In this document: positions 45,094 to 61,671 of the stretch, piece after piece
How positions within the stretch are numbered: the stretch's first letter is position 1
How the letters are laid out: each line of letters opens with the position of its first letter
Source: Obrimoposthia wandeli
Taxonomy: Eukaryota
Direction of reading: 5' to 3'
Length of the DNA: 64,000 bases
NCBI GenBank assembly: GCA_977020255.1
Contig: CDROCS010000998.1
Span: 124,001 to 188,000, forward strand
Notes under the pieces: model-generated
Databases searched by the model: none
Told to the model about the DNA's origin: nothing
Seen by the model: only the letters and a program-made list of their open reading frames with translations
Made by a program: the position numbers and the translations under genes

Positions 45094-46311
45094 ATGAATT
45101 TTAAAATAACGCTATTATCATTGGCGATTACTTTTCCATCGTTTTCTATTTACAGTGCACCACTAGTCATTGATCAAAATCTACCAAGTGAGCAATCAAT
45201 TCAACAATCAAATGCTTGGTTAGAAGTAAGCTTGGGTCAGTTTAAATCCAATATAGAACAGTTCAAATCACACATTAAAGCTGATACTAAAATTTGTGCT
45301 GTAATGAAGGCTGATGCTTATGGGAATGGCATATTTGGCTTAATGCCAACCATTCTTGAACAACAGATTCCTTGCGTGGCGATTGCGAGTAACGCTGAAG
45401 CTCGAGCAGTACGAGAAAGCGGCTTTAAAGGGCAGTTGATCCGTGTTCGCTCTGCGAGTTTAGGAGAGATCAAGCAGAGTTTAGATCTTAATATCGAAGA
45501 GTTGATTGGTAGCCACCAACAAGCAAAACTCATCGCTGAGTTGGGAGTAGAGCGCAATCAACAAATCAACGTTCATTTAGCATTAAACGACGGTGGAATG
45601 GGTCGAAATGGCATTGACATGTCCACTGAGCAAGGAAAAACAGAAGCTCTTGATATTGCAACGCAAGCTAACTTAAACATTGTCGGCATAATGACGCACT
45701 TTCCGAACTACAATGCAGATGAAGTACGAGCAAAATTAAAAGACTTTCAAACAAGTTCATCTTGGCTCATAAAACAAGCTGATTTAAAACGTGACGAATT
45801 AACTCTTCACGTGGCTAATTCTTATGTTTCGATAAATGTACCTGAAGCGCAACTAGATATGGTGCGCCCTGGCGGTGTATTGTATGGCGATCTGCCTACT
45901 AATCCAGAATACCCATCGATTGTTTCTTTCAAAACTCGAATTGCTTCTATACACCAGCTCCCTGCCAGCCAGACCGTGGGCTATGACAGTACGTATATAA
46001 CCAAACGAGATAGCGTACTTGCAAACCTTCCCGTTGGCTATTCAGATGGCTACCCTCGAAGAATGGGTAATCAGGCCGACGTCATTATCAATGGGCAACG
46101 TGCGAAAGTCATCGGTGTCACATCAATGAATACCTCCATTGTTGATATCACAGACATAAAAGGTGTGAAACAGGGTCAAGAAGTTACACTATTTGGCAAA
46201 CAAAAAAACGCACAGATTAGTGTGACTGAAATGGAAGATTACTCAAAATTGATTTTCCCTGAGTTATATACCATATGGGGGCAAGCAAACCCTCGTTATT
46301 ACATAAAATAA
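45094..46311 (+). CDS. Periplasmic broad-specificity amino acid racemase (Bsr/BsrV-like)
   Basis: Sec signal peptide; [15 protein letters not shown] motif; MTHFPNY, ANSY, VGYDSTY, GYSDGY; 29 nt after the MCP stop. Confidence 0.9.
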
Positions 46312-49252: not shown

Positions 49253-49822
49253 TTACAGCATTAACTTAAAGCTTTTTAACTTTGAAACAAAGCTTGGAAG
49301 CTTCTGCTTTTGTAAACAAGCTAAAAATTCATCTTGGGACATTGATGGTCTTTTCAATGAGCTTCTTTGCTGTTGAGCTGCTTTAACGCAAGAGCTGCTA
49401 TCCAATTCGAACATATCACACAAAAACTCGTCTGGATGTATTGCAGACAAACCAAGAGGCTCAAGTTCCTTTAGTGGAAAGTCCTTTAAGTTAAAAGTGA
49501 TGATAGACTCTGCTTGACCTTTAATTGCTGCTGCAACAACGTGTCTATCATCTACGTCCGGCAAAGTAAGCCCGACAATTAAAGGCTCATATCCCTCAAC
49601 CAAACAATCGGGAACGTTAGCGTTCATTAATGCTCTAGTTCTTTCAAGATTCTCTGGGGCGACGTCGGGATTGTTTTTAAGAAGATTACGAATCCACTCA
49701 TCATGTATCTGATCTGTCCATCGAGCTCTGAATAAACCTGTATTGGCCAAGTACATTAGGTAACTACGAAGTGGAGCAGGATACATAACACATGCATCTA
49801 ATATTACTGTATATGATGCCAT
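49253..49822 (-). CDS. PIN domain protein (putative toxin)
   Basis: VILDACVMYP, PDVDDRHVVAAA, IITFNLKDFP. Confidence 0.9.
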   Translation of the reverse strand: MASYTVILDACVMYPAPLRSYLMYLANTGLFRARWTDQIHDEWIRNLLKNNPDVAPENLERTRALMNANVPDCLVEGYEPLIVGLTLPDVDDRHVVAAAIKGQAESIITFNLKDFPLKELEPLGLSAIHPDEFLCDMFELDSSSCVKAAQQQRSSLKRPSMSQDEFLACLQKQKLPSFVSKLKSFKLML

Positions 49823-50274
49823 TAATAACCCATATTCATTTCTTGATCTAAAGCCGATAGTTCAGCAAGTGAAGCTAGTCTATGATCCTCTAGGCGAGCC
49901 TTATATTCCATAAGATCAACAAAAGTAACCTTCCGACGGTTGCCTGTACGGCTAAATGGAATTTCTTGCGAATCAAGAAGCTTAATAAATGTAGGACGAG
50001 ACATATTTAGCATATCAGCACCTTCTTGCGTTGTTAGTTCCGCATGAATAGGTGTAATGCTAACTGAGTTACCTTGACCTAGTTGAGTAAGTATCTCGAT
50101 CATTAGATTTAATGCGCTTGCTGGAATAGTGACTTCGTGAGCTTTACCTGACTTATCAACAACATTGATTCTCTGAGCTTCACCATTAGTTTCTACTACG
50201 GCAGATAATTCTTGGCTACCAAGCTTAGCCAGTGCAATTTCTTCAGCACATGGTAATTTTGTAGCTACATTCAT
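49822..50274 (-). CDS. Excisionase-like HTH DNA-binding protein (putative antitoxin)
   Basis: ELTTQEGADMLNMSRPTFIKLLDSQEIPFSRTGNRRKV; translationally coupled to the PIN gene. Confidence 0.85.
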   Translation of the reverse strand: MNVATKLPCAEEIALAKLGSQELSAVVETNGEAQRINVVDKSGKAHEVTIPASALNLMIEILTQLGQGNSVSITPIHAELTTQEGADMLNMSRPTFIKLLDSQEIPFSRTGNRRKVTFVDLMEYKARLEDHRLASLAELSALDQEMNMGY

Positions 50275-50455: not shown

Positions 50456-50468
50456 GGCTCTGTTGCAA
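50456..50468 (+). repeat. Isolated IS6-family terminal inverted repeat
   Basis: GGCTCTGTTGCAA with no transposase behind it. Confidence 0.7.
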
Positions 50469-50472
50469 CCAT

Positions 50473-52036: not shown

Positions 52037-52621
52037 TTAAATTACTTCATCAAAGCATGCTGAATCTAAAATCTCACCTACAACATCATTAAAATTTAAT
52101 CCAAACTCTTCAGCTGCCATCGGGAACACACTCCGCATTGTCATTCCAGGCACAGTGTTCATCTCGATAAGATTCACTTCATCATTCTCATCCAAAATCA
52201 CATCAATCCGCCCCCAACCACGACAGCCTAGAGCTTTATAAGCCTTTAAAATGATTGATTGCATACGTGATTGCTGTTCAATCGAGAGATCGCATGGGCA
52301 ATGATATGTAGCACTTTGACTACCAAATTTCGCATCAAAATCAAAGAAAACGTCAGATTTTATTTGCACTACAGGTAAAGCTTTATCGCCTAGAACAGCA
52401 CAAGTATATTCTCGGCCAGTTATAAACGACTCAACCAAAACAGTATCATCGTACTCAAATGCATTAATGACCGCGTCGAATAGCTGGTCTTTAGTTTCGA
52501 CTTTACTAATACCAATACTACAACCTTGTGTTAATGGCTTAACAACGACTGGGCATATTACTTGCGACAATATTGCTTCAAGTTTTCCCTCTGGCATATT
52601 CTTATTTACTGTCAACCAATC
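52037..52621 (-). pseudogene. ddl: D-Ala-D-X ligase (Ddl family) C-terminal half, 5'-truncated by IS6
   Basis: PVVVKP..QGCSIG, VESFITGREY, LGCRGWGRID, EMNTVPGMT; homology stops at the IS6 repeat at 52622. Confidence 0.85.
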
Positions 52622-52676
52622 GGGTCTGTTGCAACTAATCAGGTAAGGCATATCTACCCAGTGATGGGCTCAATGA

Positions 52677-53414
52677 TTACTGGTAAACAACCTCAACATT
52701 GAAGAGGCGATTCATGACGGCGGATCTCTCCCGAACAAAAGTTTTACGTTCGTCATGACGTAACCAACAATCAAATTGCCTCTTGTTCAACATCCGTAAT
52801 GATTCGAATCCTTGGATCGTTGACCAAGTTCGTTTTTGTATTTTAAACCCACCGGTGGCGACAACGAGTTTCTTTATTGGGGCGTGATCAGACTCGATAC
52901 CGTTATTGAGGTACTTCACTTGCCGCTGCTCGACATCCGCTCGCAGTCGTCCCTCTTTTTTCAAGCGAGCAATAGCATTCGCATATGAGGAATGCTTGTC
53001 AGTGTTTAACGTTTTAGGCTGACTGTCTATGTCGTAATATCTCAGGCAACGCCTAAGAAACTGATAAGCGGCTTCTTTATTACGTTTGTGGGAGAAATAG
53101 AAATCCAGCGTTTCGCCTTGTTTATTGATAGCACGGTAAAGGTAGTGCCATTTCCCCTTCACTTTTACGTAGGTTTCATCGAGCTGCCACGAAGAGTCTG
53201 TCCGGATAAATTGATGGCGACGTAACTTCTTACGTAATGTCGGGGCATATTCAATGAACCAACGATAAATGGTCGAACGATTAACCGAAATCCCCCGCTC
53301 TGCCAGCATGTCACTGAGGTTTGCGTAACTCATCGGTGTTGAACCATACCACCGAAGGCACCAAAGGATGATTTCAGGGGCGAAGTGTTTCCATTTGAAT
53401 TCGGGGTTGGTCAT
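52677..53414 (-). CDS. IS6 family DDE transposase
   Basis: WQLDETYVKV, NTDKHSSY, LNNGIESDH. Confidence 0.96.
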   Translation of the reverse strand: MTNPEFKWKHFAPEIILWCLRWYGSTPMSYANLSDMLAERGISVNRSTIYRWFIEYAPTLRKKLRRHQFIRTDSSWQLDETYVKVKGKWHYLYRAINKQGETLDFYFSHKRNKEAAYQFLRRCLRYYDIDSQPKTLNTDKHSSYANAIARLKKEGRLRADVEQRQVKYLNNGIESDHAPIKKLVVATGGFKIQKRTWSTIQGFESLRMLNKRQFDCWLRHDERKTFVRERSAVMNRLFNVEVVYQ

Positions 53415-53519
53415 CGAGTTGCTGGATTGGATGGGAAAGAAGGAATTCTGAGCCCAGACTGAATTATTTGCAACATATATGAACCATCCCTATTTGCACG
53501 CTAATTTTTAGTGATGTTG

Positions 53520-53655
53520 CTCTAGATCTAAGTTGCAGTCATATATTCGGCATCTAAGTTAAACTTGTGCCCTGATGTAAATCCGCACTCTTCTTCCTCA
53601 TCAGAGCCATGGCCTCAAACGGCCGTGTTGCAAAACAGGTTTTAGAAGAGCAGGT
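53520..53655 (-). ncRNA. Predicted bridge RNA/seekRNA of the IS1111 element
   Basis: Target guides at 53626-53634 and 53602-53608 and donor guides at 53573-53580 and 53540-53546, each pair separated by a stem-loop. Boundaries approximate. Confidence 0.75.
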
Positions 53656-53745
53656 ATGACCTATCGTTCATCATTAAAATTAACTCACGCAAACTTGTTG
53701 AAATTACTGTCATTTAGTTAATGTTAGACTACTTAATATTGTGTA

Positions 53746-54792
53746 TTAGGCAGCCACCGTTTTATTGTTGAGATCAAATTCATTTCCCGTATTCAGAATA
53801 GACCAGATAATCCTGGCATTCTTATTTGCTAGTGCAACCGCTGCTTTGTTAAAACTAAGCGAACATTTCTTCTGTGTTAACCAACGGCCATATTCGTTAT
53901 CTAAGTTTTTACACTTCGATAAGGCGGCTCTGGCACCGTGAATGAGCAGCGTTCGCAGGTATACATCGCCTCGTTTGCTGATACCCAACAAAATCTGTTT
54001 GTCTCCGCTTGAATGTTGCCTTGTCACTAGACCAAGCCATGCAGACATATGTCGACCATTCTTAAATACATGTGGATTTGGAACAGCGGAAATCATTGCT
54101 GTTGCTGTTAGCTCACCCACGCCGGGTATTTTCATTATTCGTTGGCAGGCTTCATTCTGACGACAAATCTGTTTGACCTTTTTTTCTAAATGTTTCAATT
54201 TCCCTTCAATATCGACTAATTCATTGTAGAGGTCACTCATGAATTCGCGAGACGATACTGTCAATTCATTGTTTTTATCAGAAATAATCAAACAAAGCTC
54301 TGCTCTAATCTTTGATGCTCCCGTTGGAATCGCGATCCCATACTCCAAATTGAGTCCTCTAATCTCATTAATCAGTGCTGTTCTATTTTTAACTAATCGG
54401 CTTCTAATTCGATGTAGAGACTGTATATCTTGTTGTTCAACTTGCTTGATAGGAACGAAATGCATTGACGGTCTGCTGGCTGCTTCAGTGATGGCTTCGG
54501 CATCATTCGCATCATTTTTGTTTGTTTTAACAAACGGCTTTACGAACTGAGGACTAATGAGTTTCACTGTATGCCCTGACCATTGAAAGACGCGAGCCCA
54601 ATAGTTGGCTCCTCCACAAGACTCCATGACAATCGTGCACGGTGGTATGTTAGCGATATATTCAGCCAATTTACCTCTTGATAGGCGCTTTTTTAAAACA
54701 GCTTTACCATTATAATCAACACCATGCAGTTGAAACATATTCTTAGCAATATCAATACCCAGTAAGTTAATGATCATCACTCTATCTCCCAC
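53746..54792 (-). CDS. IS110/IS1111 DEDD recombinase (transposase)
   Basis: LGIDIAK, VMESCG, KNDANDA (RuvC-like DEDD); Tnp domain WLGLVTRQHSSGDK with the conserved Ser. Confidence 0.96.
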   Translation of the reverse strand: MGDRVMIINLLGIDIAKNMFQLHGVDYNGKAVLKKRLSRGKLAEYIANIPPCTIVMESCGGANYWARVFQWSGHTVKLISPQFVKPFVKTNKNDANDAEAITEAASRPSMHFVPIKQVEQQDIQSLHRIRSRLVKNRTALINEIRGLNLEYGIAIPTGASKIRAELCLIISDKNNELTVSSREFMSDLYNELVDIEGKLKHLEKKVKQICRQNEACQRIMKIPGVGELTATAMISAVPNPHVFKNGRHMSAWLGLVTRQHSSGDKQILLGISKRGDVYLRTLLIHGARAALSKCKNLDNEYGRWLTQKKCSLSFNKAAVALANKNARIIWSILNTGNEFDLNNKTVAA

Positions 54793-54878
54793 TTATCAAT
54801 TAATTGCTTATTAATTGTCACCATAATCATAGCCTGGCGGGGCGTTATGGAGTGGGATGATTCATTACATTAGAGCCG

Positions 54879-54907
54879 ACTTCACTTGCCGCTGTTCGAC
54901 ATCCGCT
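54879..54907 (-). mobile_element. 29-bp internal fragment of an IS6 transposase gene
   Basis: ACTTCACTTGCCGCTGTTCGACATCCGCT matches the transposase interior of both IS6 copies with 1 mismatch. Confidence 0.7.
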
Positions 54908-55126
54908 TGTTAATCAAAAAATCAAACATAAGACGATAACACCGAATAAAAAAGCATGTTGGTATGTTTTGTTTTTGTTCTTCTTCACTGTTGAACGGCA
55001 TGTAAGCCTAGTTGCGTGACGTTCAGCATTTAAGGTATAACGGGGATAATATATAGGGGTCATAGTTACCAGCTCCTTATTCTTTATATGTTTATTATCT
55101 AAAGATTTACCGGAATAAAGAACGAT

Positions 55127-59604: not shown

Positions 59605-60466
59605 GGGTCTGTTGCAACTAATCAGGTAAGGCAGATCGACCCCAGTGATGGGCTCAATGATTACTGGTAAACAACCTCAACATTGAAGAGGCGATTCATG
59701 AAGGCGGATCTCTCCCGCACAAGAGTTTTACGTTCATCATGACGTAACCAACAATCAAATTGCCCCTTGTTCAACATCCGTAATGATTCGAATCCTTGGA
59801 TAGTTGACCAGGCTCGCTTTCGTATTTTAAACCCACCGGTGGCGACAACGAGTTTCTTTATTGGGGCGTGATCAGACTCGATACCGTTATTGAGGTACTT
59901 CACTTGCCGCTGCTCGACATCCGCTCGCAGTCGTCCCTCCTTCTTCAAGCGAGCAATCGCATTGGCGTATGAGGAATGTTTGTCGGTGTTTAATGTTTTA
60001 GGCTGATTGTCTACGTCGTAATATCTCAGGCAACGCCTAAGAAACTGATAAGCGGCTTCTTTATTACGTTTGTGGGAGAAATAGAAATCCAGCGTCTCGC
60101 CTTGTTTATTGATAGCACGGTAAAGGTAGTGCCATTTCCCCTTCACTTTTACGTAGGTTTCATCGAGCTGCCACGAAGAGTCTGTCCGAATGAATTGATG
60201 GCGACGTAGCCTCTTACGTAATACTGGGGCATATTCAATAAACCAACGATAAATGGTCGAGCGATTAACCGAAATCCCCCGCTCTGCCAGCATGTCGCTG
60301 AGGTTCGCGTAGCTCATTGGTGTCGAACCATACCAACGAAGGCACCAAAGGATGATTTCAGGAGCAAAGTGTTTCCATTTGAATTCTGGGTTGGTCATTG
60401 AGTCGCTAGATTAGAGAGGGAAAAGAAGGGATTCTGAGCCTTGGTTAAATTTTTTGCAACAGACCC
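59605..60466 (-). mobile_element. IS6-family element copy 2, intact (862 bp)
   Basis: GGGTCTGTTGCAA at 59605 and TTGCAACAGACCC at 60454-60466. Confidence 0.95.
59661..60398 (-). CDS. IS6 family DDE transposase
   Basis: 245 aa, near-identical to 52677-53414. Confidence 0.96.
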   Translation of the reverse strand: MTNPEFKWKHFAPEIILWCLRWYGSTPMSYANLSDMLAERGISVNRSTIYRWFIEYAPVLRKRLRRHQFIRTDSSWQLDETYVKVKGKWHYLYRAINKQGETLDFYFSHKRNKEAAYQFLRRCLRYYDVDNQPKTLNTDKHSSYANAIARLKKEGRLRADVEQRQVKYLNNGIESDHAPIKKLVVATGGFKIRKRAWSTIQGFESLRMLNKGQFDCWLRHDERKTLVRERSAFMNRLFNVEVVYQ

Positions 60467-60552: not shown

Positions 60553-61671
60553 GGCTTTGTTGAATCGCTCAGATAACGCTCAATTATTCCATTAGCACTG
60601 AGTTCAGCTATTATAACTAGCCTTTCATTCCGGTTAGCTGTTTAACACATGCCTTACAAATACAATGACGCCAAACGCCATCATTTCAAGAAACATACCT
60701 ACGCCTTAAATAACTATCGAGAGTACAACCTGGCTCTTAAGCAACGCGGGCGGTTCGACATTTGGATATCTGACGATATCATCAAACATTGGCAACATGA
60801 TGAACGTGTTTATGATGGTACCGGTTCTTCTGTTAAGTATCCTGACAGCACCATCGAAGCCTTCCATTACATCCGATTGGTGTATAAACTTCCTCTACGT
60901 CAAGCTCAGGGGTTTATTGAAAACTTACTGATGAAGCTTGGTATGGACGGCCTTCAATGCCCTGATTATACGTTGTTATCAAAGCGGCTGAAGCAACTTA
61001 ATATTACGGTGCCACGCTTTAGAAAACATGAAAGGCCAGATGACAAAATTGCTGCAGTAGCTATTGATTCAACGGGGCTCAAGCGATTCGGGAAGGATGA
61101 ATGGTATCAAGAAAAACATAAGGTTAATGCAAAACGCAGCTGGCGAAAAGCGCACTTTGCTGTTGATGAAGCTCACTTCATTCAAAGCGCAGTACTCACC
61201 GATAAAAATACGATGGATGATCAGGTTGTCGGGACGTTATGCCAGTCCATCATTACGGATGTCGAGCACGTCAGTGCCGACAAAATGTATGATACCAATG
61301 CGGTGTACCAAACATTAGAAGCCCATTTTCCGAATGATGAAATTGTTATTCCGCCGAAAGACAATACGTTTGCCGATGAGGCTCATCACCCAAAGAGGAT
61401 GAGCAACCTGATAGGTTGCTTTGCCCTTGGTATTATCGGTTGGCAGAGCGTGTGGCAATACGGTAAAAGGAATATCTCAGAAACAGCCATGCAACGTTAC
61501 AAGAAGATAATCGGCAATAAACTACACTGCAGAAAGATTGAAAACCAATCAAAGGAAATGTTACTCGGTTGTTCTATTTTAAATCGCTTTACTCAGCTCG
61601 GGATGCCCAATAGCTATCGAGTCGCCTAACCGTATCAAAAGACCACAAAGTTTTAGTGTTGCAACAATGCC
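60553..61671 (+). mobile_element. IS5 family (IS903 group) element
   Basis: GGCTTTGTTGAAT left end and TGCAACAATGCC right end. Confidence 0.85.
60649..61629 (+). CDS. IS5/IS903-group transposase
   Basis: CPDYTLLSKR, IDSTGLKRFGKDEW, SWRKAHFAVD, SADKMYDT, YGKRNISETAM. Confidence 0.92.
   Translation: MPYKYNDAKRHHFKKHTYALNNYREYNLALKQRGRFDIWISDDIIKHWQHDERVYDGTGSSVKYPDSTIEAFHYIRLVYKLPLRQAQGFIENLLMKLGMDGLQCPDYTLLSKRLKQLNITVPRFRKHERPDDKIAAVAIDSTGLKRFGKDEWYQEKHKVNAKRSWRKAHFAVDEAHFIQSAVLTDKNTMDDQVVGTLCQSIITDVEHVSADKMYDTNAVYQTLEAHFPNDEIVIPPKDNTFADEAHHPKRMSNLIGCFALGIIGWQSVWQYGKRNISETAMQRYKKIIGNKLHCRKIENQSKEMLLGCSILNRFTQLGMPNSYRVA

Follow-up and report, generated by a model that had tools for sequence, protein, structure and literature searches.

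How does one insertion sequence (IS) come to lie, to the nucleotide, inside the terminal inverted repeat of another? The question is raised by a 64,000-nucleotide (nt) stretch of DNA (the window: positions 124,001 to 188,000, forward strand, of contig CDROCS010000998.1 in the Obrimoposthia wandeli assembly GCA_977020255.1), in which an IS1111-family element splits the left end of an IS6-family element. The IS1111 element has the complete anatomy of its family, its target recurs in the same assembly and in other genomes, and its non-coding region covaries among relatives in two ways, guide with flank and stem partner with stem partner. We consider it very probable that IS1111 entered the left terminal repeat of IS6 by RNA-guided, site- and orientation-specific recombination.

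The Element and Its Target

The minus strand of the window carries a complete IS1111-family insertion sequence and, directly beside it on both sides, the two parts of the IS6 element that it divides:

53476..54872, minus strand: IS1111 element, complete, 1397 bp, delimited by subterminal repeats and flanks; boundary ambiguity 1 nt
54866..54872, minus strand: left-end 7-nt extension TAATGTA, also present in 15 relatives
54854..54865, minus strand: left subterminal inverted repeat ATGAATCATCCC
53746..54792, minus strand: DEDD transposase, 348 amino acids (aa), GTG start; PF01548, PF02371, NF033542
53476..53745, minus strand: 3' non-coding region, 270 nt, containing the predicted guide RNA
53479..53490, minus strand: right subterminal inverted repeat GGGATGGTTCAT, followed by ATA at 53476-53478
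52622..53475, minus strand: IS6-family copy 1, body and left-repeat positions 6 onward; right repeat GGGTCTGTTGCAAC at 52622-52635
52677..53414, minus strand: IS6 transposase, 245 aa, intact open reading frame (ORF); PF13610, NF033587
54873..54877, minus strand: 5-nt tip cut off from the left repeat of IS6, minus-strand reading GGCTC

The IS1111 element starts with TAATGTA followed by ATGAATCATCCC and finishes with GGGATGGTTCAT followed by ATA, and the positions of these two 12-nt subterminal repeats, which agree at 11 of 12 positions, give a left extension of 7 nt and a right extension of 3 nt. About 80 nt lie upstream of the transposase gene and 270 nt of non-coding DNA downstream. Subterminal repeats with 7- and 3-bp extensions and a long non-coding region downstream of the transposase gene define the IS1111 group (PMC11187229), and all are found here, together with repeats in the 11-13 bp range and a DEDD transposase within the 330-350 aa usual for the family. 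The transposase matches the profiles PF01548 (N-terminal domain, 6.9e-17), PF02371 (C-terminal domain, 4.9e-23) and NF033542 (1e-102), the last of which is entered in NCBIfam as 'IS110 family RNA-guided transposase'. Target duplication is absent, and a single T is common to the first base of the element and the first base of its right flank, so that the boundary is ambiguous by 1 nt; we read this T as a probable one-nucleotide recombination core. The coordinates in the preliminary description, its subterminal repeats 3 and 7 nt inside the ends and its lack of a target duplication all hold, the shared T being the only refinement. If the two ends were abutted (...CATATA with TAATGT...), a perfect TATAAT -10 box would arise, 16 nt downstream of GTGCAA in the window copy and of TTGCAA in most relatives.

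The left inverted repeat of IS6 copy 1 is split after repeat position 5, between GGCTC and TGTTGCAAAT. Excising 53476-54872 joins ...TTGCAACA to GAGCC, which on the opposite strand reads GGCTCTGTTGCAAATAATTCAG, and this restored left end and the element's own right end (GGGTCTGTTGCAAC at 52622) share 13 of their first 14 letters. Repeats of IS6/IS26 elements are about 14 bp long, with a GG tip, T6 G7 T8 and G10 (PMC8477213, PMC7986276), letters that are present both in GGGTCTGTTGCAAC and in the restored GGCTCTGTTGCAAA. Excision had been said to restore a perfect IS6 end; an end that fits the consensus is indeed restored, and it falls short of perfection at repeat position 3 (C versus G). The transposase of copy 1 had also been called intact, and its ORF bears this out with matches to PF13610 (2.6e-58) and NF033587 (5.1e-74), i.e., the DDE type of IS240/IS6.

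A Predicted Guide RNA and Its Fit to the Target

The non-coding region downstream of the transposase gene contains a predicted RNA with two segments that fit the split repeat, and a third that fits the element itself:

53564..53674, minus strand: predicted seekRNA/bridge-RNA core, 111 nt, with a covariation-supported fold
53626..53635, minus strand: putative top-strand guide, RNA UUUUGCAACA, reverse complement of IS6 repeat positions 6-15 (TGTTGCAAAT), 9/10 pair
53602..53608, minus strand: putative bottom-strand guide, RNA GGCUCUG, equal to IS6 repeat positions 1-7 (GGCTC, insertion point, TG), 7/7
53538..53548, minus strand: third conserved RNA segment GAAUAUAUGAC, spelling the right end of the element, then the core T and the target base after it

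The predicted fold consists of an outer stem, two further stems of 8 and 3 bp, an internal loop that holds both guides, and an apical hairpin. Across the alignment its 25 predicted pairs are paired in 98.1% of cells, with compensatory changes at 10 of them; none of 500 shuffles did as well, and pairing with slid partners fell to 40-50%. The two guides overlap at the insertion point, the top-strand guide lying 5' of the bottom-strand guide, and in seekRNAs of the IS1111 type the top-strand match likewise comes ahead of the bottom-strand match (PMC11187229). A scan of 53300-55000 against Rfam returned no curated family, only a lone chance match to nuoG (E = 0.21).

Aligning the 3' non-coding regions of relatives revealed a conserved scaffold interrupted by two variable blocks. 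The relation of these blocks to the flanks was assessed in 17 non-redundant elements, among which there are at least six distinct guide-target combinations, by 20,000 permutations of the guide-flank pairings. Variable positions of the bottom guide matched the flanks in 48 of 51 cases (permutation mean 27.5) and positions of the top guide in 99 of 136 (mean 55.7), and no permutation reached the observed match. The left tips read in this way are GGCTC, GGTTC, GGTTG, GGTTT, GGTAC and GGTAT, and the right targets TGTTGCAA, TGTCGCAA, TGACAAGTTA, TGCCAAGTT and TGGTAACTT; several of the residual differences are G:T or U:G wobbles. Where the guides are constant (GG...TG), so is the IS6 repeat, and their variable letters suit a particular IS6 subfamily.

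The third conserved segment suggests a candidate donor or handshake guide that would read the right end and the core. A metagenome element, L178, has C in place of T as its core: its left end starts with C, its right flank starts with CG rather than TG, both guides change to match, and the third segment goes from ...AUAUAUG... to ...AUAUACG.... Because these five features change together, repeat position 6 appears to be a one-nucleotide core common to donor and target. The L178 contig (5372 bp) also carries a pair of right ends, separated by 1024 bp, whose non-coding regions are identical.

The plus-strand DNA at 53621-53635, which comprises the top guide and the base of the hairpin, reads GGCCGTGTTGCAAAA and itself resembles an IS6 repeat (GG NNN TGTTGCAAA). 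The GG and TG of this look-alike are kept in all relatives, whether by coincidence or as a trace of the origin of the guide. Self-targeting there was considered and rejected on account of mismatches to the bottom-strand guide at positions 4-5.

Recurrence of the Target

The assembly (1.35 Gb, 6912 contigs) holds four further right ends of the element, eleven left ends or stubs, and one divergent relative. Each of the four right ends adjoins an IS6 copy with 80-91% identity to that of the window, at TTGCAACA or TTGTAACA, the former in the form TT(G/T)CAACA. All eleven left ends are preceded by GGNNN, with the tips GGCTC (three), GGTTG (two) and GGCTT, GGTTT, GGGTT, GGTTC and GGGCT (one each), and since their outer flanks all differ, they represent separate contexts. 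The IS1111 copies of the assembly are 81-92% identical to one another and mostly truncated.

A scan of species-representative genomes gave 45 loci, including 16 elements, at 68-91% aa identity, that share the TAATGTA and ATA extensions and the same flanks (GGNNN, the element, then TG plus 8 nt). An IS6 transposase lies directly past the right end in Photobacterium sagamiensis (two copies), gamma proteobacterium NOR5-3 and Photobacterium frigidiphilum, and in the last of these the IS6 beyond the IS1111 is in reverse orientation, i.e., it is the other IS6 end that is occupied. The finished plasmid pAWOD_1 of Aliivibrio wodanis has a 118-bp left-end stub after GGGCT, beside an annotated 'IS6 family transposase'. 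The same geometry is found in Halieaceae and in metagenomes, and on the right side only in a Legionella plasmid copy and in one metagenome-assembled genome. Overall the same repeat position and orientation were seen in more than 25 ends. A fixed target would have been contradicted by other copies with mixed flanks unrelated to IS6; nearly all copies sit in the tips of IS6-type repeats, and this repeated occurrence together with the permutation test shows that the placement is not chance.

A whole-element search of PLSDB found no full copy on any plasmid of that collection; its matches were the A. wodanis left-end stub, a partial one in Vibrio maritimus and core matches of ~70% to other IS110-family genes. 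When metagenomes were scanned with a 15-nt right-end pattern, about 10 of 120 loci were real and the rest mostly chance. In cold-seep and marine-sediment metagenomes (runs X2, X3 and X5) the dominant variant has other bases than the window at 53604 and 53606, which gives it the bottom guide GGGTTTG, the same as in assembly copy L005. An orthologous empty site was not found in the P. frigidiphilum type strain, where an sgrR-like neighbour is 97% identical and the region upstream of it differs.

Support for the junctions themselves comes from short Logan contigs, the best public run holding 43% of sampled words. A 630-nt contig from an independent public run, possibly from the same sample, is identical to the window across 54807-55100 and bridges the junction at 54872/54873. 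Cold-seep contigs with the bottom guide GGGTTTG contain the same kind of junction between IS6 end and element on the other side, reaching less than 31 nt into IS6. Read support for the insertion, which the preliminary description had made a test, is thus without differences at the left-end junction and limited at the other to those few IS6 nucleotides.

IS6 Ends in the Window and Their Surroundings

Three further IS6-derived features lie near the split repeat:

59605..60466, minus strand: IS6 copy 2, unoccupied, with two intact repeats and 93% identity to copy 1
54878..54907, no strand assigned: internal fragment of another IS6, 30 nt, next to the severed tip, 97% identical to 52917-52945
50456..50470, plus strand: solo IS6-type repeat, unoccupied, GGCTCTGTTGCAACC; bottom guide 7/7, top guide 8/10

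Both tips of copy 2 are GGGTC, with one mismatch to the bottom-strand guide of the window. No 8-bp target duplication was found at copy 1 or copy 2, the flanks differing in both; IS6 copies that lack such a duplication are common after cointegrate resolution or adjacent deletions. The 30-nt fragment that adjoins the severed tip places copy 1 against the remains of another IS6.

The window has many solo or intact IS6-type repeats (48379, 50456 and, on the minus strand, 18016, 38946 and 61671), with others at loci L223-L233. Their tips vary at positions 3-5 (GGCGT, GGCTC, GGTGC, GGTCG, GGCAT) and are constant at positions 6-13, and P. frigidiphilum adds the tips GGGCA, GGGCT, GGGGC, GGGAG and GGGTT. 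It is precisely positions 3-5 that the variable letters of the bottom-strand guide would read. In the Halieaceae elements L060, L062 and L190 the target is one end of an inverted-repeat unit (~155, 230 and 610 bp) that has no IS6 transposase; such units may be miniature elements derived from IS6 and targeted in their turn. At some Halieaceae loci the repeat-like target is solo.

The contig is bacterial, its alanine racemase (45094-46311) being 98% identical to that of P. frigidiphilum JCM 12947, a genome which itself holds many IS6 copies and IS1111 fragments. The size of the assembly marks it as that of a eukaryotic host, and the Photobacterium contig inside it reflects either an associate or a contaminant. 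A D-Ala-D-Ala ligase ORF at 52037-52651 retains only a C-terminal ATP-grasp domain (204 aa) and ends at the right repeat of IS6 copy 1, by which the gene was evidently truncated. At 49253-50274 a helix-turn-helix ORF is followed by a PIN-domain ORF, a likely toxin-antitoxin pair, and an IS5-type DDE transposase (PF13737/PF01609) at 60649-61629 directly adjoins IS6 copy 2.

Proposed Mechanism and Consequences for IS6

Work on ISEc11, ISPa11 and IS621 provides the precedents for how the insertion would have come about. The IS1111 element would excise as a circle whose abutted ends create TATAAT, and its non-coding region would yield a seekRNA, or bridge RNA, that binds the transposase. The first guide would then pair with the top strand of repeat positions 6-15 and the second with the bottom strand of positions 1-7, and the complex of transposase and RNA would recombine at position 6, between repeat positions 5 and 6, with T6 as the core. 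From the genetics of IS26, an IS6 end split in this way would be unusable in copy-in transposition until IS1111 excises.

In IS26, copy-in cointegration requires both ends, and is lost when the GG at the terminus, or any triplet of bases within the 14-bp repeat, is altered (PMC8477213). Since the first five bases of the IS6 end now lie 1.4 kb away and IS26 needs the whole repeat, the split end should be dead, and it is reasonable to regard IS6 copy 1 as immobilised by the insertion. Elements of the IS26 family also have a targeted conservative route, for which either end will do, and because only one end was hit, the right end of copy 1 may stay reactive. Precise excision of IS1111 should restore the repeat, so that the immobilisation would be reversible.

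The preliminary description also had the IS1111 hitch-hiking on DNA mobilised by IS6, for which the searches gave no backing: no identical composite of IS6 and IS1111 was found at more than one site. What does recur is a remnant, in which a 5-nt IS6 tip is followed by a 20-120-bp stub of the IS1111 left end and then by an intact IS6 end. This architecture is seen at L019, L024 (the same as L003:400-480), L020, L029, L101:1501-1640 and on pAWOD_1, and it suggests what deletion between or beside IS6 copies would leave. One could go further and regard the RNA-guided IS1111 clade of Vibrionaceae, Halieaceae, Legionella and marine metagenomes as a dedicated hyperparasite of IS6, with an arms race ongoing. 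The guides fix the invariant IS6 letters yet reprogramme positions 3-5 and 8-15, the IS6 tips are unusually variable at 3-5, and IS6 copies have repeatedly cut the parasite away to leave tip, left-end stub and IS6; such a reading we nevertheless think unlikely.

Weighing the Readings

A number of observations count against RNA-guided insertion or against its continuing today. The solo repeat at 50456 is unoccupied despite its good match, as are three GGTTG-TGTCGCAA repeats in P. frigidiphilum. An intact copy in the assembly, L003 (G000:C2331:16048-20445), fits its bottom-strand guide only (left flank GGTTG): its right flank, TGGTTTGGG, mismatches the top guide, and a perfect unoccupied GGTTGTGTCGCAAAG repeat lies ~235 bp away, so that it may be a half-site insertion or the product of later rearrangement. 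The relatives L071 and L079 match imperfectly at the left flank. The permutation count overstates the independence of the elements, because relatives share guides and targets by descent. In the transposase of the window, P257T falls within the conserved motif GL-P----SG, which here reads GLVTRQHSSG (the SG is kept and P has become T, where six relatives all have GLVPRQ), and it is accompanied by R277V. Both changes are non-conservative and affect positions that are invariant in the six relatives, down to 50% identity, which makes present activity doubtful; the window copy may be inactive or crippled at present. Finally, the RNA, the circle and the transposition of the window element are predictions from sequence.

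The two substitutions lend the most weight to the view that the element is a dead fossil, RNA-guided in the past and now inactive, with nothing currently parasitised or switched. The low identity and frequent truncation of the other assembly copies and the well-matched empty targets in the same window point the same way, whereas the transposase ORF has its whole length, no damage is seen in the subterminal repeats, the scaffold of the RNA or the two guides, which still fit the flanks, and two substitutions do not prove inactivity. We hold this to be a serious contender, if somewhat short of even chances. It is very unlikely, by our estimate, that the insertion benefits IS6, either as a reversible on/off switch or by read-through into the downstream, co-directional IS6 transposase gene. 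IS1111 does lie upstream of that gene and co-directional with it in the window and in five other cases, and the -35-like TTGCAA of IS6 stays with the IS6 body. The element is, however, in the other IS6 end in P. frigidiphilum, from which it follows that the orientation of insertion obeys the repeat and not the gene; the recurrent remnants, moreover, show IS6 ends removing most of IS1111.

Recognition of the IS6 repeat by the transposase protein alone, with the RNA matches incidental, could draw on the subterminal repeats and the constant GG and TG letters as possible protein contacts, and on the guide RNA being a prediction. However, transposases that are 70-90% identical occupy repeats differing at up to 8 of 10 positions, with non-coding letters that match each of them, and in relatives the non-coding region is essential and programmable (PMC11187229); a protein-only explanation is therefore extremely improbable. 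Repeats are classic sites of misassembly, and the locus could in principle be an assembly chimera of IS6 and IS1111 contig ends, or else a chance insertion. Yet beyond the element the 5-nt tip of the repeat is in place, the same arrangement is seen again in independent genomes, in metagenomes and on a finished plasmid, and the independent contig crosses the left-end junction without differences, all of which reduces artefact or accident to a nearly negligible probability. RNA-guided insertion into the IS6 repeat is the reading that we retain, with the question of whether this copy is still active weighed apart from it.

Significance

IS6/IS26 elements play a major part in moving accessory and resistance genes, an activity that depends on intact 14-bp ends, and the element described here would be a natural RNA-guided element that has such an end as its programmed target. 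For the IS1111 family this would add a second class of 'transposon-end' target, after the Tn21-family repeats. With its many guide variants, a one-nucleotide core variant and tolerated G:T and U:G wobbles, the clade offers a clean natural dataset for the guide-target rules of IS1111 seekRNAs. The interaction between the two insertion-sequence families can be tested directly, at the level of inactivation, of reversal by excision and of escape by deletion, and if the hyperparasite reading is true, the clade would exemplify a programmable means, found in nature, of disabling IS26-type ends.

Comparison with Known Systems

The closest parallel in behaviour is with IS4321 and IS5075, which, as Partridge and Hall reportedly described in 2003 (cited in PMC11187229), insert into the terminal repeats of Tn21-family transposons. 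Like the window element, they are IS1111-family elements with subterminal repeats, 7- and 3-nt extensions and no target duplication, and they occupy one fixed position, in one orientation, inside the terminal repeat of another transposable element. The preliminary description had drawn this parallel from the IS1111 geometry and the site-specific insertion, and the extensions and the fixed position and orientation agree with it. The targets differ, a 38-bp Tn21-family repeat in the one case and a 14-bp IS6-family repeat in the other. At the DNA level the window element is only ~70% similar to the IS4321/IS5075-type copies of Klebsiella and Salmonella plasmids, and that over a short core of the transposase gene.

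In the organisation of its non-coding region the element resembles ISPa11, ISEc11, ISKpn4 and ISPst6, in all of which this region is downstream and the top guide precedes the bottom guide, with an overlap at the insertion point. The scaffold motifs AATGATG, GAAACCTG, CAT(T)TCATCAGGGC and GCCG(G/A)ATATA are shared with the RNA of ISPa11, a seekRNA that was purified with its transposase (PMC11187229). The pair ISEc11 and ISXne4 furnishes an example of natural retargeting by guide replacement, as in the IS6-targeting clade. The four elements target repetitive extragenic palindromic (REP) sequences, attC sites or a short linear site, in contrast to the IS6-family repeats of the window clade, and their seekRNAs are published, whereas that of the window is predicted, with guides retuned to IS6 subfamilies. 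IS621 has two guides in an internal loop round a hairpin that read both strands across a short core, a separate donor-related segment and a DEDD recombinase, features that the window element has or is predicted to share. It belongs to the IS110 group, however, and carries its RNA in the left end, with the guide order reversed and CT as the core dinucleotide (PMC11208160), while the window element has its predicted RNA at the right end and a core that is apparently 1 nt long (T, or C in L178).

Nearest of all are the copies in P. sagamiensis JAMM2327 and P. frigidiphilum JCM 12947, whose transposases are 90-91% and 87-88% identical in amino acids, respectively, to that of the window and which have the same ends, the same scaffold and the same position in an IS6 repeat. 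Their guides read GGTTC, GGTTT or GGTTG with TGTCGCAA, where the window has GGCTC with TGTTGCAA. In the literature searched there was no report of an IS1111 or bridge-RNA element that targets IS6/IS26 ends, an absence that is not proof of novelty and from a search that ISfinder lay outside; a review of the IS6 family (PMC7986276) mentions neither IS110 nor IS1111. What appears to be new is the use of an IS6-family terminal repeat as the target, and a widespread clade whose guides seem to fix the invariant IS6 letters and retune the variable ones. Because the RNA-guided mechanism was already established in ISPa11, IS621 and their like, the advance is one of target and ecology, not of principle.

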